From positions 213,251-277,250 of the forward strand of contig NIVC01000744.1 of NCBI GenBank assembly GCA_002269645.1: DNA of 64,000 nucleotides, written 5' to 3'. The DNA is from Macrostomum lignano. Taxonomy: Eukaryota. How positions within the stretch are numbered: position 1 is the stretch's first letter; each line of letters begins with the position of its first letter. Of the stretch, positions 24,501-62,574 are shown piece after piece. A program made the position numbers and the translations under genes. Below the pieces are notes generated by a model that was not told the origin of the DNA, did not search any database, and saw nothing but the letters and a program-made list of their open reading frames with translations.

Positions 24501-27500
24501 TTCGGGGACTGGTACTCTAGGACTCGGGGACTGGTACTCTAGGACTCGTGGACTGGGACTCTGGGATTCGGGGACTGGTACTCTAGGACTCGGGGACTGG
24601 TACTCTAGGACTCGTGGACTGGGACTCTGGGATTCGGGGACTGGTACTCTAGGACTCGGGGACTAGTACTCTGGGATTCGGGGACTGGGACTCTAGGATT
24701 CGGGGACTGGGACTCTGGGATTCGGGGACTGGTACTCTAGGACTCGGGGACTGGTACTCTCGGATTCGGGGACTGGTACTCTCGGATTCGGGGACTGGTA
24801 CTCTCGGATTCGGGGACTGGTACTCTCGGATTCGGGGACTGGTACTCTCGGATTCGGGGACTGGGACTCTGGTATTCGGGGACTTGGATTCGGGGACTTG
24901 GATTCGGGGACTGTACTCTAGGACTCGGGGACTGGGACTCTGGGACTCGGGGATTTCTAGTCGGATTAGCCTGGCTTTAGGAATTAAGGGCTATGAATAG
25001 GAATTGCGGGTGGGGGCTGCGGCTATGAAGAGAGCAAGTGCTGCCTGCGCAGCAATGAAAGAATGAATCCTTCCAGGTCTGGGAGACCCCCGCTGTGATC
25101 TGCCTGTGCGCTTCAATCAGCTTTTATTACTGAGGCCTAATTCCGACCCCAATTATCGGAGTGGGCAGAGGCTGGGGCTTCAGAAATAGCAGCACCGCAT
25201 CTACCACAGGCTGTCTTGCTGCTGTGTGATCTATTTTTATCCAATGCAGCAGCCCAGGTGGGGTCCGGTGTCTCCGGCTTCTTGCCCTGTCGCAGTTAGA
25301 GTTATTCGATTTCTTCTTCTGCTGCTGCTTCTGCGAACTTTTGGCTGACATTTTCGGCTCGTGCGTTTTTTTGCCGGTCCAGACGGGGACACGGGTTCTG
25401 GATTAAAGAAGTTTGTGAATATTTTTCCTTGTAAATTTTGTAGTTTTTTAATATTACGGGTTGTGAAAATTCTAGTTTGTGAATATTCTAGTTTGTGAAT
25501 ATTCCAGTTTGTGAATATTCTGGTTTGTGAATATTCTGGTTTGTGAATGTTCTGGTTTGTGAATGTTCTGGTTTGTGAATGTTCTAGTTTGTGAGTATTC
25601 TAGTTTGTGAATATTCTAGTTTGTGAATATTCTAGTTTGTAAATATTCTGGTTTGTGAATGTTCTGGTTTGTGATTATTCTAGTTTGTGAGTATTCTAGT
25701 TTGTGAATATTCCAGTTTGTGAATATTCTGGTTTGTGAATATTCTGGTTTGTGAATATTCTAGTTTGTGAATGTTCTGGTTTGAGAATATTCTGGTTTGT
25801 GAATATTCTGGTTTGTGAATGTTCTAGTTTGTGAATATTCCAGTTTGTGAATATTCTAATTTGTGAATATACTAGTTTGTGAATATTCTAGTTTGTGAAT
25901 ATTCTATTCTGTGAATATTCTAGTTTGTGAATGTTCTAGTTTGTGAGTATTCTAGTTTTTGAGGCAACCCAAGTTCAGGAATCCAATCCAGGTTTATTGA
26001 AGAGTCCCCGACCGGTGCTGGAAACCCCAGAGACAGAGGAAAGCCAGTCAGGAAGGTAGGGGATATTTAGGGGATATTTATCCCCGCAAAGTTCTTGCCC
26101 GATCCTGTCCGGAATTCGGGCTGCAATGCTTTATTTAATCTAAAAGTTATGAGCTGACAAGGACTGCCGGGCTGGGGGGGGGGGGCTCGCTGGCGAAACC
26201 AGCCAATTTAGAAAGTTTTTAATCCCTCGGCCGCCTCGGCACGAAATCCCGTCCTGAAACTGGGACTGCCGGTTGCTTAGGGATCGAAATTTAGCCTTGT
26301 TGGCCCCGGCTTTGCCGCCAGTTCGGTGCGAAGCCCAGATCCCCATGGTTGTTTTGAATCCCGTGAATCTTAGATCCCCATGGTTGGTGTGAATCCCGTG
26401 AATCCCAGATCCCCATGGTTGGTGTGAATCCCGCGAATCCCAGATCCCCATGGTGTCTTGAATCCCGTGAATCCCAGATCCCCATGGTTGGTGTAAATCC
26501 CGTGAATCCCAGATCCCCATGGTTGGTGTGAATCCCGTGAATCCCAGATCCCCATGGTTGGTGTGAATCCCGTGAATCCCAGATCCCCATGGTTGGTGTG
26601 AATCCCGTGAATCCCAGATTCCCATGGTTGGTGTGAATCCCGTGAATCCCAGATCCCCATGGTTGGTGTGAATCCCGTGAATCCCAGATCCCCATTGTGG
26701 GTGTGAATCCCGTGAATCCCAGATCCCCATGGTTGGTGTGAATCCCGTGAATCCCAAATCCCCATGGTTGGTGTGAATCCCGTGAATCCCAGATCCCCAT
26801 GGTTGGTGTAAATCCCGTGAATCCCAGATCCCCATGGTTGGTGTGAATCCCGTGAATCCCAGATCCCCATGGTTGGTGTGAATCCCGTGAATCCCAGATC
26901 CCCATTGTGGGTGTGAATCCCGTGAATCCCAGATCCCCATGGTTGGTGTGAATCCCGTGAATCCCAGATCCCCATGGTTGGTGTGAATCCCGTGAATCCC
27001 AGATCCCCATGGTTGGTGTGAATCCTGTGAATCCCAGATCCCCATGGTTGGTGTGAATCCTGTGAATCCCAGATCCCCATGGTTGGTGTGAATCCCGTGA
27101 ATCCCAGATCCCCATGGTTGGTGTGAATCCCGTGAATCCCAGATCCCCATGGTTGGTGCGAACCCCAGATCCCCATGGATTGCGTGAATCCCAGATCCCC
27201 ATGGATTGCGTGAATCCCAGATCCCCATGGTTGGTGTGAATCCCAGATCCCCATGCTTTGCTTGAATCCCAGATCCTCATGGTTGGTGTGAATCCCAGAT
27301 CCCCATGCTTTGCGTGAATCCCAGATCCCTATAAGTCATTCACATACTCGTAGATCCCAAATCCCGATGACTCACATAAATCCAAGATCCCCGTGATTCA
27401 CAAAAATTCCCACCCACATCCCCGCAGATGCTGGGCGGGTCCTGCAAGAACCTACACGAGAGCCTGGACATCATCTGTGACGGCTACGCCCTGGACCTGG

Positions 27501-28015
27501 GCTCAGGCACGCCGCTGGAGGGCATGGCGCTGCTCAACATCAACTCCGTGTACGGCGGCCGCACCCTGTGGGAGAACAACCGAAAGCGAAGCTCGGCGGC
27601 CGCGGCGGCAGCTGCCGCGGCTGCAGCGGCGTCGGGGCAGCAGGGCGGCAAGCGGAAGCCGAGCGGCGGAGCCAGCGGGAGCAGAGACCGCGAGCTGTCC
27701 AGTGCTTCCCTTAGCAACAACGAGCTGGCGTTCGCAGTGCAGGACATGGGCGACCAGCTCATTGAAGTTGTCGGCCTGGAGAACGCCGTCCACGCCGGCA
27801 TGGTGGCCGGGGGGCTGCGCAGCTCCGGCAAGCGGCTGGCGCAGTGCAGCGAGGTGGTCATCCGCACCAGGAGGCGCTTCCCCATGCAGATCGACGGCGA
27901 GCCCTGGTCTCAGGCGCCCTGCACCATCAGCATCACCCACATGAACCAGGTGCCCATGATCATGGCGCCTCTGCCTGCCAAGAAGGGCGGCCTGCTGGGC
28001 CTCTTCTCCAAGTGA
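18584..28015 (+). CDS. DGKB: Type I diacylglycerol kinase (DGK-beta-like: EF-hand pair, two C1 domains, catalytic and accessory domains), 4 exons, about 773 aa if the frameshift is corrected
   Basis: Exons: 18584-18967, 22105-22525, 23289-24216, 27428-28015, all GT-AG. Motifs: [21 protein letters not shown] (EF1), [15 protein letters not shown] (EF2), [10 protein letters not shown] (C1a), [10 protein letters not shown] / [12 protein letters not shown] (C1b), [53 protein letters not shown]. As given, exon 3 has a 1-nt frameshift at the C5 run 23387-23391. The first exon may not be the true 5' end. Confidence 0.92.
19010..20930. repeat. 29-bp minisatellite (CCTCCCAGATCCTCAGTTGCTGTTCCAGC) in DGK intron 1
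   Basis: About 65 units. The unit is stop-free in all three plus frames, which explains the long repeat ORFs. A longer composite variant appears from 20220. Confidence 0.95.
21380..21930. repeat. Degenerate ~21-bp repeat (TTCTTTCTAAGAAACCGTC) in DGK intron 1
   Basis: Recurrent TTCTAAGAAAC..GTC core. Confidence 0.75.
22565..23281. repeat. 33-bp array followed by a 21-bp array (CAGCTAGATCTGCACCCACCA) in DGK intron 2
   Basis: Both share the GCTAGATCT core; about 5 units of 33 bp then about 26 units of 21 bp. Confidence 0.95.
24230..24955. repeat. ~21-22 bp minisatellite (GGGACTGGTACTCTAGGACTCG / GGGACTGGGACTCTGGGATTCG) in DGK intron 3
   Basis: Tandem array starting next to the donor site. Confidence 0.9.
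25450..25960. repeat. 18-bp minisatellite (GTTTGTGAATATTCTAGT variants) in DGK intron 3
   Basis: About 27 units. Confidence 0.9.
26330..27335. repeat. 35-bp minisatellite (ATCCCAGATCCCCATGGTTGGTGTGAATCCCGTGA) in DGK intron 3
   Basis: About 28 units. Confidence 0.95.
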
Positions 28016-28905: not shown

Positions 28906-29314
28906 GACAAGCCCAAAACAGTTGGTTTTATTCTAGAAACAGAATTCGTGTTCCCCTTCCTCGCGCTGTGCAGCCGCGGTTCTCCCAGTAATTATTCGCA
29001 AGTCGCGACCGCTCCGCGTGTGCCGCGGTATTTCACCGAAATGTCTAATCAAAACCAGTTCTGTGTTGTAATCAGCCGCACCTCCCCCCCGCCGTACTCT
29101 GTTCGTCACATTTGCGCCGAAAACTTTGATTTCAGCTCGTGCACTGTTTTGCTGCTTTGCTGCAATAAGATGCCCCCTGACTGCCTGCCTTCCGCTTGGC
29201 CCCTGTGGTGTGTTGTTAATTGTAGCTCTTGCTCCTGCTGGCTCGATGGCTGCCACTCACTCTGCACCGTCTACTTCTCAGTCCACATTGTCTACTTCTT
29301 ACTCTGCTCTGCCT

Positions 29315-29910
29315 AACTCTCACTTTGCATTGTCTACTTCTCCCTCTTCATTGGCTACTTCTCCCTGTTTATTGGCTACTTCTCATTCTATTTTAGCTAC
29401 TTCCCACTCTATTTTGGCTACATCTCACTCTACTTTAGCTACTTCTCACTCTACTTTAGCTACTTCTCACTCTATTTTAGCTCCTTCTCACTCTATTTTA
29501 GCTACTTCTCACTCTATTTTAGCTACTTCTCACTCTATTTTAGCTCCTTCTCACTCTATTTTAGCTACTTCTCACTCTATTTTAGCTACTTCTCACTCTA
29601 TTGTAGCTACTTCTCACTCTATTTTAGCTACTTCTCACTCTACTTTAGCTCCTTCTCACTCTATTTTAGCTCCTTCTCACTCTATTTTAGCTACTTCTCA
29701 CTCTATTTTAGCTACTTCTCACTCTATTTTAGCTACTTCTCACTCTATTTTAGCTACTTCTCACTCTATTTTAGCTACTTCTCACTCTACTTTAGCTACT
29801 TCTCACTCTATTTTAGCTACTTCCCACTCTATTGTAGCTACTTCTCACTCTATTTTAGCTACTTCTCTCTCTTCATTGGCTACTTCTCCCTCTATCCTAT
29901 CTACCTATTC
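29315..29910. repeat. 21-bp minisatellite (TTAGCTACTTCTCACTCTATT)
   Basis: About 28 units with degenerate edges. Confidence 0.95.
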
Positions 29911-38776: not shown

Positions 38777-39281
38777 TAGCAATCCATTCTGTTCTGCATC
38801 ATCCATGCAGGCTAGATTAGCAATCCATTATATTCCTGCATCATCCATGCAGGCTAGATTAGCAATCCATTCTATTCCTGCATCATCCATGCAGGCTAGA
38901 TTAGCAATCCATTCTGTTCCTGCATCATCCATGCAGGCTAGATTAGCAATCCATTCTGTTCCTGCATCATCCATGCAGGCTAGATTAGCAATCCATTCTG
39001 TTCCTGCATCATCCATGCAGGCTAGATTAGCAATCCATTCTGTTCCTGCATCATCCATGCAGGCTAGATTAGCAATCCATTCTATTCCTGCATCATCCAT
39101 GCAGGCTAGATTAGCAATCCATTCTATTCCTGCATCATCCATGCAGGCTAGATTAGCAATCCATTCTGTTCCTGCATCATCCATGCAGGCTAGATTAGCA
39201 ATCCATTCTGTTCCTGCATGCAGGCTAGATTAGCAATCCATTCTGTTCCTGCATCATCCATGCAGGCTAGATTAGCAATCC
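38777..39281 (+). repeat. 42-bp satellite, array 1 (TCCTGCATCATCCATGCAGGCTAGATTAGCAATCCATTCTGT)
   Basis: About 12 units, each with a CCTGCAT/ATGCAGG hairpin. Confidence 0.95.
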
Positions 39282-40176
39282 AATGTTCGGTATACTATTC
39301 CTAATCTCCCCAGAAAAGCGCCCCTCAAATCGTGGAATTAAAGCTCTGTTATTGAAGCGCAAGCACTGAATTCAGCGATCCGTGATTAATAATTCCCCTT
39401 AAAACTCCCCTTTCTCCAGTCGCTTGCCATACAGAGCCGGTGTGTCCGCTGGCTTAAAAAATCGCTTGCACAGGCAGCAGGGCGGCTGCTTGTCGTCTTT
39501 GCTGCTGCAGGTTTCAGCTGCTGATCAAAGCCAGAGAGCAGGGGGGCATGGGGCACTGCCCTACGCGTGGGGTCGCCCCGGTAAAGAAGCGACAATCCGC
39601 ATCGGCGCAGTCTTGAGCACGATCTCGCTTTTCTTCTTAGTGCGAGGATGAGCGCTCTGTCAGTCACGGTCATGATTCACAATCCTTGCAGAAATATGCT
39701 GTAAAATGCTACAAACTCTACTACTTTCATGTGAGTAGTGCTTTAGCGAAAATTCATCCCATTTTTATTGGGTTTGTCAAGAACGGCTGCAGCATCGATG
39801 AGGATGGCGATTTTATTGCCAGCAAACCAGCTCAAATGTCCTCAAACCTCTCGGCTTGGCCTCCGGGACGCAAATTAGCTGCAATTAATCATCGATCGCG
39901 GGGTCTTGATTGACTCTCACCTGACGGGCCGCATCCTGCTGCCGGCCGCCAAAACCGCCCACCCCATCCGCAAATCCCGGTGCCGCCCTAGAGCAGCCGC
40001 TGCATCAGCTCCTGTCAGAGCTACCGCCACAAAGTCTGCATCAATTTTCTGATGGCGGCTTGGGTGCATTGGGGGCGGCTGCATGCGCTGGGACTGTGTG
40101 TCAGTTTTGTGGGGTTAAATATTCAGGCAAAATAAACTATCCACTGGCTGTATGCTTTGATGAGATGCGCTTGATA

Positions 40177-41100
40177 GGTGAGATTGGATGCCTAAAGGGT
40201 GAGATTGGATGCTTGAAGGGTGAGATTGGATGCTTGAAGGGTGAGATTGGATGCTTGAAGGGTGAGATTGGATTCTTGAAGGGTGAGATTGGATGCTTGA
40301 AGGGTGAGATTGGATGCTTGAAGGGTGAGATTGGATGCTTGAAGGGTGAGATTGGATGCTTGAAGGGTGAGATTGGATGCTTGAAGGGTGAGATTGGATG
40401 CTTGAAGGTGAGATTGGCTGCTTGAGGGGTGAGATTGGATGCTTGAAGGTGAGATTGGATGCTTGTTGGGTGAGATTGGATGCTTGAAGGTGAGATTGGA
40501 TGCTTGTTGGGTGAGATTGGATGCTTGAAGGGTGAGATTGGATGCTTGAAGGGTGAGATTGGATGCTTGAAGGGTGAGATTGGATGCTTGAAGGGTGAGA
40601 TTGGATGCTTGAAGGGTGAGATTGGATGCTTGAAGGGTGAGATTGGATGCTTGAAGGTGAGATTGGCTGCTTGAGGGGTGAGATTGGATGCTTGAAGGTG
40701 AGATTGGATGCTTGTTGGGTGAGATTGGATGCTTGAAGGTGAGATTGGATGCTTGTTGGGTGAGATTGGATGCTTGAAGGGTGAGATTGGATGCTTGAAG
40801 GGTGAGATTGGATGCTTGAAGGGTGAGATTGGATGCTTGAAGGGTGAGATTGGATGCTTGAAGGGTGAGATTGGATGCTTGAAGGGTGAGATTGGATGCT
40901 TGAAGGTGAGATTGGCTGCTTGAGGGGTGAGATTGGATGCTTGAAGGTGAGATTGGATGCTTGTTGGGTGAGATTGGATGCTTGAAGGTGAGATTGGATG
41001 CTTGTTGGGTGAGATTGGATGCTTTTAGGGTGAGATTGGATGCTTGAAGGGTAAGATTGGAGGCCTGAATAGGGAGATTGGATGCTTGAAGGATGAGATT
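40177..41100 (-). repeat. 21-bp satellite, array 1 (GGGTGAGATTGGATGCTTGAA)
   Basis: About 44 units with a 249-bp higher-order period. Confidence 0.95.
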
Positions 41101-41502
41101 GTATGATCGGAAGTAGTGATTGCATACTTTTGGGATGATCTTAGCTTTCGTCAGCCAAATTTTATTAAAACTTAGTCCAAGCACGCTATAGCAAGCAGTC
41201 ACCTGTCTGCCGAGGTAGCCAGAGCAGTCATAAAAGTGTTCAAATTGTTTTCTTCACCTCAGAGACCTTTAGAATTCACTCGAGATTGAAAATCAGAAAT
41301 TCTCGCTGCTAATTAGGCATTGGAGATTGAATTCTCTGAAATTCGGGGCTGAGGGTTTTGCGTGACTTCCTCAGACCGCAGGAGTTTGGCTGCCCCCCCC
41401 CCCCTGATTAGTCCGGGGGTCGCGAACTGATGAGCTGGCAGGCTGGAGTGACAAGCAGGCAGCCACATTTCTGCACAGCCCTCGGAACCAGCGAAGTCTG
41501 AG

Positions 41503-44500
41503 GTGCAGAATGGATTGCTAATCTAGCCTTCATGGATGATGCAGGAACAGAATGGATTGCTAATCTAGCCGGCATGGATGATGCAGGAACAGAATGGATT
41601 GCTAATCTAGCCTGCATGGATGATGCAGGAACAGAATGGATTGCTAATCTAGCCTGCATGGATGATGCAGGAACAGAATGGATTGCTAATCTAGCCTGCA
41701 TGGATGATGCAGGAACAGAATGGATTGCTAATCTAGCCTGCATGGATGATGCAGGAACAGAATGGATTGCTAATCTAGCCTGCATGGATGATGCAGGAAT
41801 AGAATGGATTGCTAATCTAGCCTGCATGGATGATGCAGGAATAGAATGGATTGCTAATCTAGCCTTCATGGATGATGCAGGAACAGAATGGATTGCTAAT
41901 CTAGCCTGCATGGATGATGCAGGAACAAAATGGATTGCTAATCTAGCCTGCATGGATGATGCAGGAACAGAATGGATTGCTTATCTAGCCTGCATGGATG
42001 ATGCAGGAACAGAATGGATTGCTAATCTAGCCTGCATGGATGATGCAGGAACAGAATGGATTGCTAATCTAGCCTGCATGGATGATGCAGGAACAGAATG
42101 GATTGCTAATCTAGCCTGCATGGATGATGCAGGAACAGAATGGATTGCTAATCTAGCCTTCATGGATGATGCAGGAACAGAATGGATTGCTAATCTAGCC
42201 TTCATGGATGATGCAGGAATAGAATGGATTGCTAATCTAGCCTGCATGGATGATGCAGGAACAGAATGGATTGCTAATCTAGCCTGCATGGATGATGCAG
42301 GAACAGAATGGATTGCTAATCTAGCCTGCATGGATGATGCAGGAACAGAATGGATTGCTAATCTAGCCTGCATGGATGATGCAGGAACAGAATGGATTGC
42401 TAATCTAGCCTGCATGGATGATGCAGGAACAGAATGGATTGCTAATCTAGCCTGCATGGATGATGCAGGAACAGAATGGATTGCTAATCTAGCCTGCATG
42501 GATGATGCAGGAACAGAATGGATTGCTAATCTAGCCTGCATGGATGATGCAGGAACAGAATGGATTGCTAATCTAGCCTGCATGAATGATGCAGGAACAG
42601 AGTGGATTGCTAATCTAGCCGGCATGGATGATGTAGGAACAGAATGGATTGCTAATCTAGCCGGCATGGATGATGCAGGAACAGAATGGATTGCTAATCT
42701 AGCCGGCATGGATGATGTAGGAACAGAATGGATTGCTAATCTAGCCTGCATGCAGGAACAGAATGGATTGCTAATCTAGCCTGCATGGATGATGCAGGAA
42801 CAGAATGGATTGCTAATCTAGCCTGCATGGATGATGCAGGAACAGAATGGATTGCTAATCTAGCCTGCATGGATGATGCAGGAACAGAATGGATTGCTAA
42901 TCTAGCCTTCATGGATGATGCAGGAATAGAATGGATTGCTAATCTAGCCTGCATGGATGATGCAGGAACAGAATGGATTGCTAATCTAGCCTGCATGGAT
43001 GATGCAGGAATAGAATGGATTGCTAATCTAGCCTGCATGGATGATGCAGGAACAGAATGGATTGCTATTCTAGCCTGCATGGATGATGCAGGAACAGAAT
43101 GGATTGCTAATCTAGCCTTCATGGATGATGCAGGAACAGAATGGATTGCTAATCTAGCCTTCATGGATGATGCAGGAATAGAATGGATTGCTAATCTAGC
43201 CTGCATGGATGATGCAGGAACAGAATGGATTGCTAATCTAGCCTGCATGGATGATGCAGGAACAGAATGGATTGCTAATCTAGCCTGCATGGATGATGCA
43301 GGAACAGAATGGATTGCTAATCTAGCCTGCATGGATGATGCAGGAACAGAATGGATTGCTAATCTAGCCTGCATGGATGATGCAGGAACAGAATGGATTG
43401 CTAATCTAGCCTGCATGGATGATGCAGGAACAGAATGGATTGCTAATCTAGCCTGCGTGGATGATGCAGGAACAGAATGGATTGCTAATCTAGCCGGCAT
43501 GGATGATGCAGGAACAGAATGGATTGCTAATCTAGCCTGCATGAATGATGCAGGAACAGAGTGGATTGCTAATCTAGCCGGCATGGATGATGTAGGAACA
43601 GAATGGATTGCTAATCTAGCCGGCATGGATGATGCAGGAACAGAATGGATTGCTAATCTAGCCGGCATGGATGATGTAGGAACAGAATGGATTGCTAATC
43701 TAGCCTGCATGCAGGAACAGAATGGATTGCTAATCTAGCCTGCATGGATGATGCAGGAACAGAATGGATTGCTAATCTAGCCTGCATGGATGATGCAGGA
43801 ACAGAATGGATTGCTAATCTAGCCTGCATGGATGATGCAGGAACAGAATGGATTGCTAATCTAGCCTTCATGGATGATGCAGGAATAGAATGGATTGCTA
43901 ATCTAGCCTGCATGGATGATGCAGGAATAGAATGGATTGCTAATCTAGCCTTCATGGATGATGCAGGAATAGAATGGATTGCTAATCTAGCCTGCATGGA
44001 TGATGCAGGAACAGAATGGATTGCTAATCTAGCCTGCATGGATGATGCAGGAACAGAATGGATTGCTAATCTAGCCTGCATGGATGATGCAGGAACAGAA
44101 TGGATTGCTAATCTAGCCTGCATGGATGATGCAGGAACAGAATGGATTGCTAATCTAGCCTGCATGGATGATGCAGGAACAGAATGGATTGCTAATCTAG
44201 CCTGCATGGATGATGCAGGAACAGAATGGATTGCTAATCTAGCCTGCATGGATGATGCAGGAACAGAATGGATTGCTAATCTAGCCGGCATGGATGATGC
44301 AGGAACAAAATGGATTGCTAATCTAGCCTGCATGAATGATGCAGGAACAGAATGGATTGCTAATCTAGCCTGCATGGATGAACAGAATGGATTGCTAATC
44401 TAGCCTGCATGAATGATGCAGGAACAGAATGGATTGCTAATCTAGCCGGCATGGATGATGCAGGAACAGAATGGATTGCTAATCTAGCCTGCATGGATGA

Positions 44501-44735
44501 TGTAGGAACAGAATGGATTGCTAATCTAGCCGGCATGGATGATGCAGGAACAGAATGGATTGCTAATCTAGCCGGCATGGATGATGTAGGAACAGAATGG
44601 ATTGCTAATCTAGCCTGCATGCAGGAAAAGAATGGATTGCTAATCTAGCCTGCATGCAGGAACAGAATGGATTGCTAATCTAGCCTGCATGGATGATGCA
44701 GGAACAGAATGGATTGCTAATCTAGCCTGCATGCA
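41503..44735 (-). repeat. 42-bp satellite, array 2 (reverse complement of array 1)
   Basis: About 77 units, including a 959-bp higher-order duplication. Confidence 0.95.
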
Positions 44736-45289: not shown

Positions 45290-45715
45290 CATCTGATCTC
45301 ATCTTAAAATCATCCAATGTCAATTTAATATAATCTCGAACTTTTTGCATCCAATCATATTCTAATGGCATCTGATCTCACCTTAAAAGCAACCAATCCC
45401 ACCCTACAAACATCTAATCTCACCCTTCAAGCATCTAATCTCACCCTTCAAGCATCTAATCTCACCCTTCAAGCATCTAATCTCACCCTTCAAGCATCTA
45501 ATCTCGCCCTCAAGCATCTAATCTCGCCCTAAAAAATCCAATCGCACCCTAAAAGCATCGAGTCTCATGATACAAGCATCCTATCTCGCCTTAAAAGCTT
45601 CTACCCAACAAGAATCTAATATCTCACCCAATCTCATCCAATATCAACACACAAACATCCAATCTCACCCAGTAAGCATCCAATCTCGCCCCACAAGCAT
45701 CCAATCTCACCCTTT
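45290..45715 (+). repeat. 21-bp satellite, array 2 (CTTCAAGCATCYAATCTCACC; reverse complement of the 40177-41100 family)
   Basis: Short conserved core with degenerate flanks. Confidence 0.85.
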
Positions 45716-46067
45716 AGCAAAGCCAGACCCGATTCCGATGAGCAGCATAGAAAAGCCAGCAGGAGACTCTGAGAGATCTCAGATCTGCGTGAGCCGCCTT
45801 CAGTGCTCCATTTGGCAATTAATTGGCTGGCGGAGGTCCGGTGGGAAACAGAGGCTGCCAGCGGATGCAGCAGAGTCACTGCGGATTCCCACTGACTATT
45901 TTTTCTGGCCTCAAAGTCCGCCTACGCGGCAGCAGCTTCGTCTCTCCATCCAAGGAGGCCGTGGGCCAGAACTTGGAGTGCCAAGCTTTGCCCAAAACCC
46001 CGTTGGGTTGGCACCAAATTTCAGAACAGGCCGGTTGTTCAGAGGGTCTAATGCACAATATCTCATT

Positions 46068-46985
46068 CACAATGTCTCATTCACAATATCTCATTCACAA
46101 TGTCTCATTCACAATATCTCATTCACAATATCTCATTCACAATGTCTAATTCACAATGTCTAATTCACAATGTCTAATTCACAATGTCTAATTCACAATT
46201 TCTAATTCACAATATCTCATTCACAATGTCTCATTCACAATATCTCATTCACAATGTCTCATTCACAATATCTCATTCACAATATCTCATTCACAATGTC
46301 TAATTCACAATGTCTAATTCACAATGTCTAATTCACAATGTCTAATTCACAATATCTCATTCACAATGTCTCATTCACAATATCTCATTCACAATGTCTC
46401 ATTCACAATATCTCATTCACAATGTCTCATTCACAATGTCTCATTCACAATATCTCATTCACAATGTCTAATTCACAATATCTCATTCACAATGTCTCAT
46501 TCACAATATCTCATTCACAATGTCTCATTCACAATATCTCATTCACAATGTCTCATTCACAATATCTCATTCACAATGTCTCATTCACAATATCTCATTC
46601 ACAATGTCTCATTCACAATATCTCATTCACAATGTCTCATTCACAATGTCTAATTCACAATGTCTAATTCACAATGTCTAATTCACAATATCTCATTCAC
46701 AATGTCTCATTCACAATATCTCATTCACAATGTCTCATTCACAATATCTCATTCACAATGTCTCATTCACAATGTCTCATTCACAATATCTCATTCACAA
46801 TGTCTAATTCACAATATCTCATTCACAATGTCTCATTCACAATATCTCATTCACAATGTCTCATTCACAATATCTCATTCACAATGTCTCATTCACAATA
46901 TCTCATTCACAATATCTCATTCACAATGTCTCATTCACAATATCTCATTCACAATGTCTAATTCACAATTTCTTATAATTCACAA
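46068..46985. repeat. 14-bp satellite (TCTCATTCACAATR)n
   Basis: About 65 units with a 336-bp higher-order block. Confidence 0.95.
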
Positions 46986-47388
46986 TATTCATTCAAAACA
47001 ACTAATTAACAATGCATTGTCTGAAGAATGAGGATTTGGCACTCCAGATCCCAGTTCAAAGCCTCCTTGGCCATCCCAGTTGCTGAGCACCCTCCAACTC
47101 AAACAACCGGCAGGGGGCAGGCTGAGTCTAAGGAAAAAAAGATGAGTGGAAGCAGCCTTTCTGGTTGGTGGAGGCTGACAGAAAATTATAGACGCAATTA
47201 GTAGGAGTCTTGAGCAGCTCATTATCTTGCTGGCCTGATGAAGCTTAAAAACTTTTTGAGCTTGTTTACTGACAGCAGTTTTGAACTGTAGTAATTAGAC
47301 CATGAAGACGGGAAAGTCTTCTCGACCTAGAGGGCAAGGAGAAATCATTCAGTGCCCTCCGACCAAGTCAAGGAGGGTGCAAAACTGA

Positions 47389-47402
47389 CCAGTAGATGGC
47401 GC
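47389..47402 (+). promoter_or_regulatory. CTCF-consensus-like motif CCAGTAGATGGCGC, about 190 bp upstream of the knottin ATG
   Basis: Full match to the CCASYAGRKGGCRS consensus. Function is not shown. Confidence 0.25.
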
Positions 47403-47589
47403 CTAATGCGTCTGTGGCACTAACGGGCGTGGCTGTCAGCTCACCGGGCAGAGGTCACGGTACAGCGCAACCCTGTGGGTTTTTGCCATAGACATCAAAA
47501 GATTCACTCTGCACTTCTGCGCTCCTAAGAGAGGCTGCTGCAGACAGGCGTTGACCCCAAGTAAACTTTTGGAAGCTATAAAAGTCTAA

Positions 47590-48019
47590 ATGAAGACCCA
47601 ACTACTCGTGCTGCTGGTTCTGCTTGCCCTGCTCGCGGTTCTCGGTGAGTTTCGCCCCGAATTTAGGTTTATTTAGCATATCCTTGGCTTGCCTGCTGCT
47701 AATAACCAATCGCATGCAAAACGCCCATGCAGACTGCTCAACCGCGTGCAGACCGGAATGCCTCAAGAAAGGCAGGCGCTGTCAGGATAGCCTAGCCTCG
47801 TACTGCTGCTCAAAGCGCTGCTCCGGGATACCTGGCTATTGGAAGATGTGCGAGTACACCATTTTACCCTCGATTTTGAACAAGGAGAACTTCGAGACTG
47901 ACAAACTCCTCTTCAATATTGACACTCTATGGTCGGGCACTCAAAATCTACAATCAATATTGACAGATCAAGCTTCAATTTTGACAAACTCTGGTTCAAT
48001 TTTGACAATGCACGTTTAG
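47590..48019 (+). CDS. Small secreted inhibitor-cystine-knot (knottin) peptide precursor, 2 exons; C-terminus extended by a MITE insertion
   Basis: Exon 1 (47590-47644) encodes the signal peptide MKTQLLVLLVLLALLAVL and ends at a phase-1 G|GTGAGT donor. The 88-nt intron has a CTAAT branch-like site and a CAG acceptor at 47732. Exon 2 gives DCSTAC-RPE-C-LKKGRR-C-QDSLASY-CC-SKR-C-SGIPGYWKM-C-E, the C-C-CC-C-C framework. The reconstructed original stop is TAA TGA (now at 48980-48985). The present frame reads on to TAG at 48017-48019. Confidence 0.8.
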
Positions 48020-48979
48020 TCAACTTCTCCTGGGAGAATTCGGTAACAAAGTAATCCAATGAAAGCCTGAACGGGGTTGAAGTGAGCTGTGCAAAATCAG
48101 CTTATTCTGACTTTGCTTTTTGGATCTACAAGTATTGATAAAATTTATTTTTCTCCATCCTTTAGACACACAGACTAAAATAGCCTGACTGGTTGGGCTG
48201 CAAAGTCTGATTCTATTTTGACAGAGTTGCTTCAAAACTGACACTCCATGGTTTGTGTACCCAAAAAGTCCGCTTCATTTTTGACAACTCCGAATCAATA
48301 TTGAACAGTTAACAATCGATTTTGACTAAGACATTTTTTGAAATAGATTTTGACAATTTTTACTAAGTTAAACCATACATGTACTCGTAGATACATGCAG
48401 CCAGTACCCCTTCTCCCAAATAGCAAGTACCCCCCCTCAAGAGAGAAATCTTAGTAAAAATTGTTAAAATCTATTTCAAAAAATGTCTTAGTCAAAATTG
48501 ATTGTTAACTGTTCAATATTGATTCGGAGTTGTCAAAAATGAAGCGGACTTTTTGGGTACACAAACCATGGAGTGTCAGTTTTGAAGCAACTCTGTCAAA
48601 ATAGAATCAGACTTTGCAGCCCAACCAGTCAGGCTATTTTAGTCTGTGTGTAAAGGATAGAGAAAAATAAATTTTATCAATACTTGTAGATCCAAAAAGC
48701 AAAGTCAGAATAAGCTGATTTTGCACAGCTCACTTCAACCCCGTTCAGGCTTTCATTGGATTACTTTGTTACCGAATTCTCCCAGGAGAAGTTGACTAAA
48801 CGTGCATTGTCAAAATTGAACCAGAGTTTGTCAAAATTGAACCAGAGTTTGTCAAAAATGAAGCTTGATCTGTCAATATTGATTGTAGATTTTGAGTGCC
48901 CGACCATAGAGTGTCAATATTGAAGAGGAGTTTGTCAGTCTCGAAGTTCTCCTTGTTCAAAATCGAGGGTAAAATGGTA
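47857..48979. mobile_element. Foldback MITE: non-autonomous DNA transposon with about 510-530 bp inverted arms and an 82-bp spacer
   Basis: The left arm (47857-48367) is a near-perfect reverse complement of the right arm (48450-48979); the right arm has one extra 21-bp duplication. Ends are CACCATTTTACCC / GGGTAAAATGGTA. A TA duplication lies at 47855-47856 and 48980-48981. Internal TTTTGACA and TCAATATTGA motifs are repeated. Confidence 0.9.
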
Positions 48980-49295
48980 TAATGACTGACGTCAATGGCA
49001 ACTGCGCGAGTCTTTGGCTGATGCTCGAGACAGACACTTTGATTGACCACTGAACTTGTTCACCAATATGAGTTGAAAACACAGTAATTTGAGTCTTTGG
49101 ATTGGAGCTTATAATACCTTTTAGATCTCAAAAGTGGAGCAAAGCTTTAACTTATGCGTTGTTACAATCGCAAAAATCGTGAAAAAATACAAAAACATCA
49201 TGGGTTGCAATCGATTAGCATTACTGTCCATTCCGCCCGACTTCCCTGAGCAGGCGCACTCGGATACATACGCAGTCGTATGCACAGGCACACAC

Positions 49296-52379
<3,084 letters not shown>

Positions 52380-53114
52380 GTTGTTGTTTATAATCTTGGC
52401 ATAGTGACTGCAGGGCACGTTAATCCGCAAGGTAATCCGATATCCATGCTGGCGCGACCTGCCGGAGCCAGAAAACAATTTGCATACTGAATGAAGAGAC
52501 CTCCACAGCAGCCAAAGCCCAGAGGCCGTCGCGGGAGAGACTGGCGGTTTTGTGGACTCAGAGCTGAGCAGCTGGAATCCTTAGCTGAGCTCATCTGTCG
52601 AAGTCTTCCTACTTCAACGGCTCAGCGGCCCACCCACTAGGATGAGGTTACGAAGAGCTGCAAGTTCCTTTCGAACAGAATTTCTGCGCTAAAGTGCACC
52701 AGATTTGATTAGGGCCGGGTTTCACAGCAAAATGCACCAGCGAGATCGGAAGCCTTCAGTTTTTTTAGAGTTGAACTGACATTGTCACTCGTTTGCTCAT
52801 GCGTGTGGCAGGAGATACTTTGTCGAAAAAAAACAGAAAAAAGAGGCGACTGAGGCAGCAGGCTGATACGAGCCAAGCTTTTTTGAAGTGCTGCATGGAC
52901 CTCCTGTTGGATAGTTGGTTTGCAGATATGTACATCTGCCATGTACATCTGTTTGCCGATATTGATTTGTCGCAGCTAAATGAATATATAAGTATAAATA
53001 TACCAGTCGGAAGGCCAACTTAGTCTAAGTTCGTGTGTACCCCAAAATCAGCCTGACTCTCTCAACACAATGCCTTTTGGAGACTCGCCCACAATGCCAT
53101 CACTTGTGATGAGC

Positions 53115-53570
53115 CATCAAATCAGATCATGCAACCGTCAAATCAGATCATGCACCATCAAATCAGATCATGCAACCATCAAATCAGATCATGCAACCAT
53201 CAAATCAGATCATGCACCATCAAATCAGATCATGCAACCATCAAATCAGATCATGCAACCATCAAATCAGATCATGCACCATCAAATCAGATCATGCAAC
53301 CATCAAATCAGATCATGCAACCATCAAATCAGATCATGCAACCGTCAAATCAGACCATGCAACCATCAAATCAGATCATGCAACATCAAATCAGATCATG
53401 CAACCGTCAAATCAGACCATGCAACCATCAAATCAGACCATGCAACCATCAAATCAGATCATGCAACCATCAAATCAGATCATGCAACCATCAAATCAGA
53501 TCATGCAACCATCAAATCAGATCATGCAACCGTCAAATCAGATCATGCAACCGTCAAATCAGATCATGCC
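53115..53570. repeat. 21-bp minisatellite (CATCAAATCAGATCATGCAAC)
   Basis: About 22 units. Confidence 0.95.
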
Positions 53571-57518: not shown

Positions 57519-60500
57519 GCACCACGGTGCAGATAAATGCCGCTACCTCCTCGTGGTCAGAGCGGAGAGCCGCGCTTAACTGCTGCGGCGGCCAAATGCG
57601 GCAGGACCAAGCGAGGGCAGCGGAGCGCCCGTCGGCGTGTTGAGCGGAACCGATGAGGCCGGCTGCGTGGCGCCGCCCGTCGAGCTGTCGCGCGGGTCCA
57701 CTCGGATCCTCCGGGTGGCGCCGGGGACCGTGAGGCTCAACTGCATCGAGCCCAAGCTGTACCACAGGGCATGCTTCGGGTCGGGACGCTGAACTGCCGC
57801 ACTCTCAAGGCTGCTTGGCGTAGAGGGGTGCTGGCGACATCATCTCGCTGCAGGAGGTGTCTATCAAGGCCGACCCGGGACTTCATTGTGAGGACTTGGG
57901 CGCCGGGTGGACCCTCTACTATACTTCTGCGGACCAGCGAGGCAGTGGAGGAGTTGGAGCGCTGATCGGGCCGAGGCTGCAGCAGAGCTGTCGCTGCGTC
58001 TCCCTGTCCCCCGGTTGCTTCGGATCGACGTCCGGCTACGCAGTCGGAATGCTCGCCTGTTCTGCGCGTACGCGCGCCCTGCCACACGCCCTGACGAGGC
58101 TCAAGAGTTTTTCGAGCAGCTCTCAGTGCAGGTAGAGGCGATGGCGCAGCGTGACACAGCGGTCGTCCTCGGAGACCTGAACGCAGTCCTGCGTAGGTCC
58201 GAGAGGTCGCTGTTCGTGACGCCACGCGGGAACAACAACACCGAGGCACTGGAGGACTTCCTGGAGAGGCAGGACATGGTGTTGGCACACACCCGCTTCC
58301 GCAAGCCACTGAGCGGTCTCGCAACCTTCGTGGGCTGCAAGCGGAGGCGACGGAACGCGCGTGGCAGGAACGCAACCCGGAGAAAAGCACAGCTCGACCA
58401 CGTGCTCGTGCGTTTCCGTGAGCGTCGTCGCGCCGTCAACTGCCGCACCATCAAGCCGCTGGCTCTGCGGTCCGATCACCGGCTCCTCATCTGCGACCTC
58501 AACCTTCGCGATCCGCTCTACCGTCCGCCGAAGCGGCCACCGCGGCGCTACTACCGCGCGCTCAGAGCCACCGATACGCAGCGTTGCTTTGCTAGCGCCT
58601 TTAACACTGCGCTGGGCGACAAGCGTGGAAATGCCGAGTATGCGGAAGTGTGCGCTGCAGTCAGAACCGCCTCGGAGCAAGCAGTCCCGATGATGCAACC
58701 GGCTCAACGTGGGCAGCCGGTCTGGCAGGACGACCCTGCGATTCAGGCAGCGAGGGAAGATCTGGAGAGGCTCCGCTTGAGCAGGTGACCAACCCGCGAG
58801 GCAGAGGCAGCTCTGGCGGCTGTCTACCTGCAGCGCCAACAAGCGGCTGTCGATGACGCCATTCAGGCTGTCTCTGCCGCTGGGCCGATGCCAGAGGGCG
58901 CGTGGCCTGGTCCGCCATCAACGCTCTGACGGGGCGAAAGCGGCGCAATCCGCTGAACCTGGCTGGTGACACTCCGGATGAGCGCAGGAACGAGCTGCGC
59001 GAGTTCTTCGCCGCCATCGTCAACGCGCCGCCACCCCCGCTGCCAGACAGTCTGACGCTGCCGCCGGAACGCCGTTGCCGGCAGAGGAGAGTTTCAGCGT
59101 AGGCCCAGTCAACGCAGCCGACGTTGTCAAGCTCGCCCAGCAGTCACCGGGCGGGAAAGCGCTGGGTCCGGACGAGGTGCCCATCGAGGCGCTGCGCATC
59201 CCCTGTGTGGCCGCTGAGGTCGCCAGAGTGATGAACCGCGTGCTCTTCGGTGAGGCGGCGCCCAACGAATGGACCACGGCGCACATCGTTGCTGTTCCAA
59301 AGAAGCCGGGCACCACTAGGCCGGGCACCACGGGCACATCTGCCTTCAGTCCTGTGCAGCGAAGCTGTTCAACCGGATGCTGCTTTCGCGGTTGCAGCCC
59401 GTGCTGGATCCGTACCTGCGCCCAGAGCAGAACGGGTTCCGGCCCATCGCGGCACAGTGGCGCAGATCCTGGCTCTTCGCCGAGTCATCGAGGAGGCGCG
59501 GATTCGCCAGTCGATCCTGATTTTAATCTTTATTGATTTCAAGAAGGCATTCGACTCGGTTGTCAGAGCCGTGCTTCCAATGGTGCTCCGCGCGTACAAC
59601 GTGCCCGAGCAGCTGATCTCCGCCATCATGGCGATGTACCGTGATACGACAGCTGCTGTGACAACACCGGACGGCCTATCGGACTCCTTTGAGACATCCT
59701 CCGGAGTACTTCAGGGAGATACGCTGGCGCCGTTCCTGTTCGTCCTGGTGCTTGACTGGGTGCTGCGGACTGCTCTTCCTACCGACGACGACGGTTTTCT
59801 GCTGCGGCGACGCGTAGGTCGACGTCAACCGGAGAAGCGGCTCAGCGTGCTTGGCTACGCCGACGACCTCGCCCTGCTGTCCTCGACCGTCGAGGGCGCC
59901 CAACGGCAGCTGGACAGGCTAGTTGCCGTTGCGGCGAGTGTCGGCCTGGTGGTCAACACACAGAAGACCGTTGTGCTCTGCGTGCCGGACGACATCGAGG
60001 CTGCAATTTATTCTGCCGAGGCGCTGACGGGCAGGCGACCGAACTCCCGCGATGTCAGCAGTTCGTCTACCTCGGCGGTCTGGTTCCAGACGCTCGCGAG
60101 GACCTGCGACGCCGCCGCGGGCTTGCCTGGGCTGCCTTTCGTTCTGTGAGGGAGTCCTGCAGTCGAGGCCCTACCGGACCGCCAGAGGGCGGCGCTGTTC
60201 CAGGCGGTAATCGAGACCGTCCTGCTGTACAACGCCGAGACCTGGACGCTGACGGACTCACTCGAACAGCAAGTCGATGCGGCGCACGCTGGTCTGCTGC
60301 GCGCCGCCTTCAACATCGGCGTCGAGCGAGTCACCAACGCGGCACTCTATCGCCGCGCTGGCCTGCCACGTCCAAGTGATCTACTGCGCCGTCGGCGACT
60401 CCAGCTCGCAGGCCATCTCATCCGCGCCGAGTCGTACTGCCCACAGCCGGTGCAGGAGGTGCTGCTGCTCACGCTGCAGGCACCCTACCGGCGAGGTCAA

Positions 60501-60608
60501 GCGCGAACTCGGCGTTATGTCGACTGTCTGCTGGCTGACGCCGGCGCCCCGGACACTGCCGGTGGCGCGGCCTTTGTTCGCGCCCAAGCCATGAAGCGCG
60601 CCCTGTGA
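57519..60608 (+). mobile_element. RTE-clade non-LTR retrotransposon (APE endonuclease + reverse transcriptase), near full length, inactivated by multiple frameshifts and a stop
   Basis: APE motifs: MLRVGTLNCRTLK (57771), SGGVGALI, LFCAYA, VVLGDLNA, QLDHVLVR, SDHRLL. RT motifs: ALGPDEVP, IFIDFKKAFDSV, GVLQGDTLAPFLF, GYADDLALL, GLVVNTQKT, FVYLGG. The C-terminus ends MKRAL-stop at 60606-60608. The coding frame is split over several ORF fragments. No TSD was identified. Confidence 0.92.
57538..57603 (+). ncRNA. HDV-like self-cleaving ribozyme core at the RTE 5' end (P1 5' strand missing)
   Basis: P2: TGCCGC 57538-43 / GCGGCA 57598-603. P3: ACC 57545-47 / GGT 57555-57, closing the L3 loop TCCTCGT. 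P1 3' strand: CAGAGC 57558-63. P1.1: GG 57564-65 pairs with CC in L3. P4: GCCGC 57569-73 / GCGGC 57585-89. J4/2: GGCCAAAT, with the candidate catalytic C. Confidence 0.7.
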
Positions 60609-62574
60609 CGCTGACTTTTGCCATCTTGACAGCGTATTTTGTTGTTGTTGTTATTACAATTACCACTAACACTATGCTCATCTTGGTAGTAGTGCATACT
60701 TTTGTTCACAAGCACTTACTTTCGCGTCGAAAACTTTTTCAATTGTATTCAACCAACTAGATAATTTTAGCAAAGTCTTCGGTAGCGCCTTAATACTTGT
60801 TTACACTGCCATCTTTCATTACTTTAAATAAATCGAATAATACGAACCACAAATGTTGCACTAATATAGAGTACGAATAGGAAAGAGCCTTTAAAAGTAA
60901 TTCGTATGCATCGTTAATGAAATTCCTGCAATTCAAAAAATTGCAAAATAATATTTTTCCAAGAAGAAAGAATTCAAGTCAAAATTTAAAATTATGTTTC
61001 CTTTGGCCTTAGGCTTCATTTTTTGTTACTTACTAATTATTAAACACAAAATAAATGCAACCATTTGTTCCTATCAGATTTTTTCAACAGAACTCTGTTT
61101 AATTTTAAGCTACGGCTAAAACAATAAAAAGTAAAAAACTGTCCTAGCAAAACGTGTGGCCCACAAAATAATGAGGCAGACAGTGTGGGTGAGGCAGAAG
61201 AGGGGGTGGCTCTGGCTCAGTATTCATGTCTAAATATTGCATAGTCGCTTTGCAATTTTTCCAGGTTCTTCAAAAGATTTGGATGTCCCAGTAAAAGTCC
61301 ACTTAGGTAATAGCCACTTTGGTAATAGTATATTTTGGTATGCTGAAAAATTAAGTGTTAGGTTAGTGCTAGCTAAGAAAGATAGGAAATAAATTGAAAA
61401 TGTACTCTAATCTACATACTCACACACTGCAAGGTTCAAATTCAAGTAGAAATATTTATACATTATGTTTAAGCTGATTAATATTACCAAATATGGAAGA
61501 TACTAAGCCTGACATCTTGGCTCCTTGCAAATGCAAGAATAATATCAGTGTTTATTCATACATCCCCATGCTAATCCTGATAATATTATCCACATGATGC
61601 CATGCCAATAGTGCCCTGCTTATTTGCATAATAGCTAAAGCTAAATAACAATATTATGCAATATATTAACTTCTTGTGGTTGCTATTCAAATTCTCTATA
61701 CTGGAGTTGAGTAAAAGAAATTGAAACAAAGACGCTGCCAGGGCAATCAGGTTTAATATTTGTGTAGGTTAATATAGGTTGACTGTAAATATTATAATAT
61801 TAATGATCTAGTTAGATTAGGTGCACACACTGGCTCACTAACTCACTTAACTATTATATATTGGATAATATTAGTATTGGGATTGGGCTAATTATAATAA
61901 TAATAGTTGCAATATTAACTACACTCTAAGTGAACTTAAATAATGTAATATTCTAGTATAAGTCTATGTCTACGGCAAGTAGTGTGACATCTATGTCTAT
62001 GATGAAGTGTCTAAAGGTTAGGCCTATTTGTAGCCACCTGAGAGACCAATTGTACAATGCATGCCTAACTGGTTTAAACTGGTTTTACCTTATATTTGCA
62101 TACAAAACACTATTCAAAACAAATAATATAATAAAAATTACAGTAAGTAAATAGTTGGTATATTACATTCCTAGAATATGTTACATTAGTATAAATTCTT
62201 AAAAAATACTAGCAATACAAATATAAATGCATATTTCATTACACATATAATGTTATATTATTTACACTTTGTATTTTTATTTTTATTGGGTTTCATAAGG
62301 ACCTATTTTGATTAATAAGCAGAGGGCTTATCTTTACCCTTCTAGTCTAGTTAGATATTTTCAATGATATAAGTTATAATATTATATGATTAATAATTCT
62401 TAGACATATTTGTAATAAGCTATAGGCCTATGAATGTTTAGATTTACTTCTCTTTGAGCATATTCTAATTTGGTTAAATTTGTGCATTAACTTTGTAAAA
62501 AAAATTAAAGGCAGCAAAGAACATTAAGCAATTGTTGAAAATTGAAATTTGAAGTAAGTAATTATAAAGGAAGT

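Follow-up and report, generated by a model that had tools for sequence, protein, structure and literature searches.

A probable gene for a secreted knottin-like peptide in Macrostomum lignano, paralogous to Mlig004682 and carrying a foldback transposon in its stop codon

Does the sequence that begins at position 47590 of a 64,000-nucleotide (nt) stretch of Macrostomum lignano contig NIVC01000744.1 (assembly GCA_002269645.1, positions 213,251 to 277,250 of the forward strand; here called the window) form a gene for a small secreted cystine-knot peptide, and if so, what does that gene encode now? An initial annotation, made from the letters of the window, had placed there a hidden two-exon gene for a 59-residue (aa) toxin-like precursor. 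The locus is best explained as a diverged paralog of the M. lignano Mlig004682 genes that is missing from the annotation, with two exons and an ancestral product that was a 59-aa precursor. We consider it quite probable that a genuine paralog lies here, coding for a secreted knottin-like peptide and interrupted in its stop codon by a transposon; this estimate covers the identity of the locus and not a function in host defence. The host, supposed at the outset to be a free-living flatworm, is indeed Macrostomum lignano, as an open reading frame (ORF) for diacylglycerol kinase (DAGK) in the window is 99% identical to an M. lignano protein.

The start ATG lies at 47590 on the forward strand and is immediately preceded by an in-frame TAA. 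Exon 1 (47590..47644, +, 55 nt) starts with this ATG, comprises 18 signal-like codons, MKTQLLVLLVLLALLAVL, and ends one base into codon 19. It is followed by an 88-nt phase-1 intron (47645..47732, +, GTGAGT...CATGCAG) with the splice donor G/GTGAGT at 47644/47645 and the acceptor CATGCAG/AC at 47732/47733. The coding part of exon 2 (47733..47854, +) runs from D19 to E59 and contains eight cysteines. The spliced frame translates as MKTQLLVLLVLLALLAVLDCSTACRPECLKKGRRCQDSLASYCCSKRCSGIPGYWKMCE. Codon E59 is GAG (47852-47854), and the next codon is TAC, so that there is no stop at this point; the frame stays open for 54 further codons, YTILPSILNKENFETDKLLFNIDTLWSGTQNLQSILTDQASILTNSGSILTMHV, and closes with TAG at 48017-48019, for a total of 113 aa. 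This read-through extension (47855..48019, +) is encoded in the left arm of the transposable element described below.

The only homolog recovered in a word-indexed search of 5.8 billion protein clusters was BOX15_Mlig004682g2 (P0001, 69 aa, annotated as "hypothetical protein"; E = 1.4e-11, 65% identity in the BLASTP local alignment), and its cluster also includes Mlig004682 g1 and g3. The paralogs carry the identifiers PAA46843.1, PAA64343.1 and PAA85542.1 (UniProt A0A267DC28 and A0A267GJV9), and their three loci (L001-L003) all come from assembly GCA_002269645.1. A profile made from the family alignment and run against 1.84 billion representative proteins at E <= 0.001 found nothing beyond P0001. 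Therefore the family is, as far as the searched databases show, restricted to M. lignano; it consists of four loci with two distinct sequences. Tandem paralogs were sought with tblastn in the window and in L001-L003, and none were found there.

The DNA of the window copy is colinear with that of the paralogs over the gene itself, about 290 nt of its 5′ flank and about 90 nt of its 3′ flank. Identity is 93-95% in exon 1, the most conserved segment, 84% in exon 2, 72% in the intron, 76-77% in the 290 nt upstream and 66-67% in the 3′ flank, with about 42% outside the homologous unit. The paralogs have the same start codon, the same intron position and phase (intron of 104 nt, GT...AG) and end in ...KKCE-TAA, and they have 17 to 18 of 19 signal residues in common with the window copy. 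Two exon indels distinguish the copies (3 and 27 nt) and both are in frame, whereas the intron indels break the frame. All eight cysteines and the motifs YCCSKRCSG and GYWK.CE are invariant among the window copy and the paralogs. Over the mature-region alignment the window copy is 73% identical to P0001; its last loop is nine residues shorter (x9 vs x18), the stretch from C24 to the following cysteine is one residue shorter, and D19 replaces G19. Comparison with the paralogs gives a ratio of nonsynonymous to synonymous substitution rates (dN/dS) of about 0.85, from 18.5 nonsynonymous and 6.5 synonymous differences.

The two-exon structure proposed by the initial annotation is thus borne out by the splice sites, by the frame and by three annotated paralogs that share it, and the splice from 47644 to 47733, with a phase-1 intron after the signal-like exon, is present as claimed. 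Conservation of the cysteines in homologs, on which that proposal had been staked, extends to all eight. Two further statements need correction. A 59-aa product describes the state before the insertion, as the present sequence codes for 113 aa, and the gene was less hidden than supposed, since the three paralogs sit in GenBank and UniProt as hypothetical proteins.

Upstream of the start codon, the region 47300..47589 (+) is homologous to the Mlig004682 paralogs (76-77% identity to L001 and L002) and is a candidate promoter and 5′ untranslated region (UTR), the promoter role being suggested by sequence conservation. The homology ends abruptly at about 47300, with 42% identity beyond that point. 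Within the region, a block of about 35 nt (47480-47514, +), TTTTTGCCATAGACATCAAAAGATTCACTCTGC, is near-invariant across the three paralogs and the window copy; it sits 75-110 nt 5′ of the ATG, is more conserved than the intron and the 3′ flank, and may represent a core promoter, a transcription start or a trans-splice region. A TATAAAA at 47577-47583, 7 nt before the ATG, is not kept in the paralogs. On the other side of the gene, the sequence 48982..49070 (+) is colinear with the paralogs at 66-67% identity and corresponds to the start of the ancestral 3′ UTR, now 1.1 kb away from the coding sequence; homology to the paralogs fades past about 49070.

What separates the coding sequence from its ancestral 3′ UTR is a non-autonomous element of 1123 bp (47857..48979, strand not assigned) of the foldback or miniature inverted-repeat transposable element (MITE) type, with arms of about 510 nt and an 82-nt loop at 48368-48449. 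The arms pair as 47855-48008/48828-48981 (99% complementary), 47954-48170/48645-48861 (95%) and 48166-48367/48450-48651 (99%); on the opposite strand the element matches itself at 90.8%, and the whole folds into a single 1.1-kb hairpin of -916 kcal/mol. Its termini are CACCATTTTACCC and GGGTAAAATGGTA, and it has subterminal repeats of 21 nt of the TTGTCAAAATTGA type. A TA duplication bounds it: the left copy (47855..47856, +) corresponds to the opening TA of the ancestral TAA stop, and the right copy together with the following A (48980..48982, +) reconstitutes that TAA, with TGA next. The insertion site accordingly reads GAG-TA/CACCATTTTACCC...GGGTAAAATGGTA/TA-ATGACTGACG.

In silico excision of the element and one TA yields ...TGG AAG ATG TGC GAG TAA TGA CTG ACG, and the paralog loci read ...TGG AAG AAG TGC GAG TAA TG(G/A) CTG ACG at the same place, with TGA in L002 and L003. 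The restored sequence is colinear with the three paralogs through the stop and about 90 nt of 3′ flank, sharing with them the ...CE-TAA ending and homology in both the 5′ and the 3′ flank. In the paralogs the site is empty, GAGTAATGA, and the element is missing from all three of their loci; the window copy alone has it in the stop codon, and the window copy alone is unannotated. Therefore a TA-targeting, non-coding foldback/MITE-type element hit the TA of the ancestral TAA, as terminal inverted repeats, a TA duplication and an empty site in relatives are found together. A search of 119 kb of M. lignano DNA, comprising the window and L001-L003, turned up no further copy of the element. The TA duplication and terminal inverted repeats are features in common with Stowaway-like and Tc1-mariner MITEs and with Foldback elements, as are the lack of coding capacity, the short subterminal repeats and the hairpin formed by the whole element; classic MITEs are smaller than its 1123 bp, and any assignment to one of these superfamilies is provisional. 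The intact TA duplication and the 95-99% identity of the arms suggest that the insertion is recent and possibly polymorphic.

The minus strand of the right arm (48981-48799) yields the tail of 54 residues a second time. Because the right arm encodes the identical peptide, the tail is repeat DNA and not part of the gene. A true C-terminal pro-domain was rejected on the grounds that the sequence recurs inverted 0.8 kb downstream and that the paralogs have no such tail. That a palindromic long read misled the assembly was likewise rejected as unlikely: the flanking gene sequence is not duplicated, a TA duplication stands at the bounds, both flanks align colinearly with the paralog loci, and the two arms are unequal by a single 21-nt repeat unit.

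The likely course of events is that a TA-targeting foldback/MITE element entered the TAA stop of this copy, after which any mRNA would encode a 113-aa protein with an acidic, transposon-derived tail of 54 residues and would carry a 1.1-kb near-perfect hairpin in place of its normal 3′ UTR. With the tail, the hairpin and the loss of the 3′ UTR, the window copy is probably impaired or silenced. It has an even chance of being dead or silenced altogether, so that only Mlig004682.g1-g3 would be functional, which is compatible with the locus being a genuine paralog gene. The TAA is destroyed and the 3′ UTR displaced, the hairpin is very stable, the tail lowers the net charge from about +4.7 to +1.8, the copy is missing from the annotation and from protein collections, and by inspection the change of G19 to D abolishes one canonical signal-cleavage site of the paralogs. 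However, the start codon, the splice donor and acceptor, the frame and all eight cysteines are intact, the gap in the annotation may reflect nothing but a published filter on transcripts that overlap repeats, and the intact TA duplication and near-identical arms leave room for an insertion that is recent or polymorphic.

The filter belongs to the annotation of assembly Mlig_3_7 in GenBank, which was built solely from RNA-seq-based transcript assemblies with TransDecoder ORFs and from which transcripts overlapping repeats were dropped (PMC5730564). Since the annotation was built from RNA-seq transcripts, the paralogs have spliced-transcript support, and transcription of the Mlig004682 family is thereby shown indirectly. 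The window copy could have been filtered out owing to its transposon.

At the N terminus of the peptide, inspection shows MK, a 14-residue core of Leu, Val and Ala, and S21-T22-A23 before C24, with the classical n-, h- and c-regions of a secreted protein and small residues at -3 and -1; the shape of this signal-like sequence suggests that the peptide is secreted. Past the hydrophobic core there are eight cysteines and not the six of the initial annotation, whose C-x6-C-x7-CC-x3-C-x9-C spacing stands (C28-x6-C35-x7-C43C44-x3-C48-x9-C58); the two additional cysteines, C20 and C24, are likewise conserved in the paralogs. A signal cleavage after C24, as first drawn, is arbitrary and leaves six cysteines. 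In the window copy the best site by the (-3,-1) rule lies between A23 and C24 and leaves seven; in the paralogs, V17-L18-G19 before C20 offers an additional site that leaves eight. The mature peptide may therefore contain six, seven or eight cysteines. The precursor has no propeptide, the first cysteines standing directly after the hydrophobic core. The predicted mature peptide has about 36-40 aa and is basic (isoelectric point of about 9, net charge of about +4 to +5, computed as about +4.7), and the predicted mature peptide of the paralogs has a net charge of about +5.7.

The six core cysteines have the C-C-CC-C-C order and the compatible loop lengths of a knottin, with x9 in the window copy and x18 in the paralogs. 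AlphaFold2, given the 33-aa six-cysteine core and an alignment of three sequences, returned a model with short strands and a predicted local distance difference test score (pLDDT) of 73.4. When this core model was compared with the PDB using Foldseek, there were 26 matches at E <= 10, nearly all of them knottins. The best were bidentatide (template modelling score (TM) 0.73, probability 0.94) and spinach trypsin inhibitor III (SOTI-III, TM 0.79), and omega-atracotoxin-Hv1, imperatoxin A, psalmotoxin-1 (PcTx1), Hc3a, Alo-3 and omega-conotoxin FVIA were also among them. By sequence, the best PDB matches were PAFP-S (1DKC, E = 0.07-0.15) and Alo-3 (1Q3J, E = 0.72), both non-significant. Pfam scans of the 113-, 59-, 41- and 35-aa forms and of the mature part of the paralog gave only sub-threshold matches, to Toddler, IBIN and Conotoxin; the Conotoxin model (PF02950) reached 11.3 bits where 25.1 are required (E = 0.69), and the match covered just its cysteine-rich end, profile positions 49-74 of 75.

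Judged from the cysteine spacing together with the AlphaFold and Foldseek results, the six core cysteines most likely form a fold of the inhibitor-cystine-knot (ICK) type, and the core model with its Foldseek matches lends moderate support to a knottin-like fold. Of the cystine-knot proposal in the initial annotation, the spacing holds, and a moderate-confidence model resembles solved knottins; no match reached statistical significance. Its conotoxin and toxin-family framing did not survive the Pfam toxin models, PF02950 remaining below threshold and no Pfam toxin family being matched.

Several points weigh against reading the locus as a gene for a secreted knottin-like peptide with an effector role. 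No fold or sequence match is significant (Foldseek E >= 0.43; phmmer E = 0.07), and for 33 residues a Foldseek E <= 0.001 is not to be expected. The AlphaFold core model could to a large extent be a reflection of the cysteine spacing. An earlier model, made from the single sequence of a 40-aa form that included the N-terminal CSTAC, was poor, with a pLDDT of 61; it was discarded, its Foldseek matches to antifreeze proteins at E of about 9 being meaningless. The best (-3,-1) site yields an odd number of cysteines. The dN/dS of about 0.85 is compatible with fast-evolving effector loops and also with relaxed constraint, and is uninformative on its own. Direct expression evidence for the window copy was not found, and both its 59-aa and its 113-aa product are absent from a collection of 15 billion proteins. 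Finally, the name Mlig004682 was not found in the searchable full texts of the literature, nor in the available supplementary text of PMC5816591, PMC5946080, PMC5730564, PMC7336406 and PMC12732829.

Among PDB entries, the closest likenesses in sequence are to two knottin-type antifungal peptides, PAFP-S of Phytolacca and Alo-3 of the beetle Acrocinus longimanus. The flatworm peptides have in common with these the pattern C[IL]K[KN]G..C ... (Y)CCS..C ... (P/A)G(Y/W/Q), a near-identical cysteine spacing, a similar size and a cationic character. The E-values are non-significant, and convergence on the scaffold is equally possible as homology. The flatworm peptides differ in having two additional N-terminal cysteines.

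A second likeness is to CRP-I of Mytilus, which like the flatworm family comprises lineage-restricted C-C-CC-C-C peptides in a non-venomous marine invertebrate, with a conserved signal, divergent mature loops and variation at the gene level between copies (PMC10138031). CRP-I has a propeptide with a dibasic cleavage site, forms a large and highly variable family, and its function is not established (PMC10138031). Sequence similarity of Mytilus CRP-I to the flatworm peptides was not detected.

For the function of the flatworm family, we tentatively favor host defence, at a confidence somewhat short of even. In the proposed mechanism, a secretion signal would be followed directly, with no propeptide between, by a strongly basic, cysteine-rich peptide, which would work outside the cell as a stable cationic effector of host defence and might bind microbial or fungal surfaces in the manner of knottin-type antifungal peptides. 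Host defence is favored because of the small, cationic, disulfide-rich chemistry, the nearest (non-significant) sequence neighbors and the lifestyle of M. lignano, a diatom-grazing meiofaunal worm that is not known to have a venom apparatus.

Among the alternatives to host defence, the one that fares best, although unlikely, is a non-defensive secreted role, as a seminal-fluid or prostate peptide, a component of the adhesion gland or a signalling ligand. Lineage-specific, fast-evolving secreted proteins in Macrostomum are often linked to reproduction. The present family is an orphan, for which 1.84 billion representatives yielded no homolog beyond M. lignano, its dN/dS is about 0.85, and reproduction-related genes of Macrostomum evolve rapidly (PMC7336406). 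On the other hand, Mlig004682 was not found in the supplementary text searched, that of PMC7336406 included as far as it was accessible, and peptides that are knottin-like and cationic more typically serve in defence.

More improbable still is an ion-channel toxin resembling a conotoxin, a spider knottin or a calcin, used for prey capture or against predators, as the initial annotation had suggested. With O-superfamily (VI/VII) conotoxins and spider and scorpion ICK toxins the flatworm peptides have in common the C-C-CC-C-C framework, the predicted knottin-like fold and a basic surface; omega-atracotoxin-Hv1, imperatoxin A, PcTx1 and omega-conotoxin FVIA appear among the Foldseek matches (TM 0.50-0.68), and a conserved signal region combined with variable loops is a toxin-like pattern. 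Precursors of conotoxins and spider toxins contain a propeptide. The flatworm precursor has none and so departs from the signal-propeptide-mature organization of conotoxin precursors; its signal is unrelated, the Conotoxin model scored below its cut-off, and other Pfam toxin families were unmatched. Four loci with two distinct sequences are not an expanded venom arsenal, and the host is not known to be venomous. The nearest matches, themselves non-significant, are antifungal knottins and not neurotoxins, and no evidence was found for an ion-channel or prey-capture role. Host defence is thus the more likely of the two.

That the locus is no gene, its ORF, GT-AG pair and cysteine array having arisen by chance in repeat-rich DNA, is hardly credible: the locus is flanked by satellite arrays and the loose C-C-CC-C-C pattern also appears in shuffles (at least one in 6 of 30 composition-preserving shuffles, or about one in five; a mean of 0.2 per shuffle against two in the six-frame translation of the window), so that the array alone is weak evidence, but the three annotated paralogs have an identical exon-intron structure, exons are better conserved than the intron and flanks, exon indels stay in frame, and all eight cysteines are kept, by which this explanation is effectively refuted already. 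The combination of a start codon, a signal-like exon, a GT-AG intron and conservation in three paralogs goes far beyond chance. The second loose match in the window (29113-29211, +), CAENFDFSSCTVLLLCCNKMPPDCLPSAWPLWC, has no start codon or signal-like context, adjoins a 21-nt tandem-repeat region with SILATSH repeats (about 29300-29900) and is taken as chance.

The remainder of the window was surveyed as well. The diacylglycerol kinase gene (18782-28009, +) has exons at about 18782-18970, 22105-24219 and 27425-28009 and encodes EF-hand, C1, DAGK_cat and DAGK_acc domains. Its 799-aa ORF (22033-24432), the one used above to identify the host, contains the C1, DAGK_cat and DAGK_acc domains and is 99% identical to A0A1I8IF89; the ORF at 18581-20224, which includes the EF-hand exon, continues through an 84-nt tandem repeat. 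A nested position of the peptide gene within the DAGK gene was rejected, as the DAGK exons end at 28009 and the peptide gene lies 19.6 kb downstream.

The peptide gene is set among repeats. On its 5′ side lies a 14-bp satellite of about 66 copies (46046-46973), and on its 3′ side an (ACTA)n microsatellite of about 772 copies spanning 3.1 kb (49294-52379), which has an extreme GC skew. A 42-bp satellite occupies 41506-44733 (about 78 units) and recurs in inverse orientation at 39000-39282. A 21-bp satellite with a 249-bp higher-order period spans 40169-41105, a related 21-bp array of opposite orientation spans 45368-45713, and a further 21-bp array of about 22 copies spans 53114-53569. Long ORFs in the satellite arrays, for example 41532-42779, are repeat artefacts. 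A non-LTR (long terminal repeat) retrotransposon (about 57700-60611, +) encodes an Exo_endo_phos endonuclease and an RVT_1 reverse transcriptase, and copies that are 65-78% identical to it adjoin the paralogs (10605-13802 in L001; about 10603-10976 in L002 and L003, in the opposite orientation). The similarity of 58.4-60.6 kb to the paralog loci was therefore rejected as synteny, being due to copies of this retrotransposon. An Rfam search of the window returned nothing.

Taken as a family, the Mlig004682 genes and the window paralog may be the first knottin-type secreted effectors recognised in Platyhelminthes, species- or genus-restricted, cationic and disulfide-knotted, serving in defence or as toxins; this joint reading is held tentatively, below even confidence. 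Under it, the family could have evolved in the style of toxins and antimicrobial peptides, with a frozen signal and cysteine scaffold, variable loops, and paralogs that differ in presence and integrity. A literature search on flatworms, inhibitor cystine knots and toxins returned no paper describing a flatworm knottin.

The insertion in the stop codon is a clean natural case of a TA-targeting element making a read-through allele through a TAA, and annotation filters that remove transcripts overlapping repeats can conceal such copies. Plants, fungi, arthropods, molluscs and other groups are already known to have knottin-like peptides, and current understanding would not be overturned by a knottin-like family in flatworms. 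If both the knottin fold and the defence role are true, flatworms would join the phyla that use the knottin scaffold, and M. lignano, which is transgenic and tractable by RNA interference, would gain a small, easily synthesised effector with which innate immunity, the biology of mucus and glands, and the origin of such genes could be studied.

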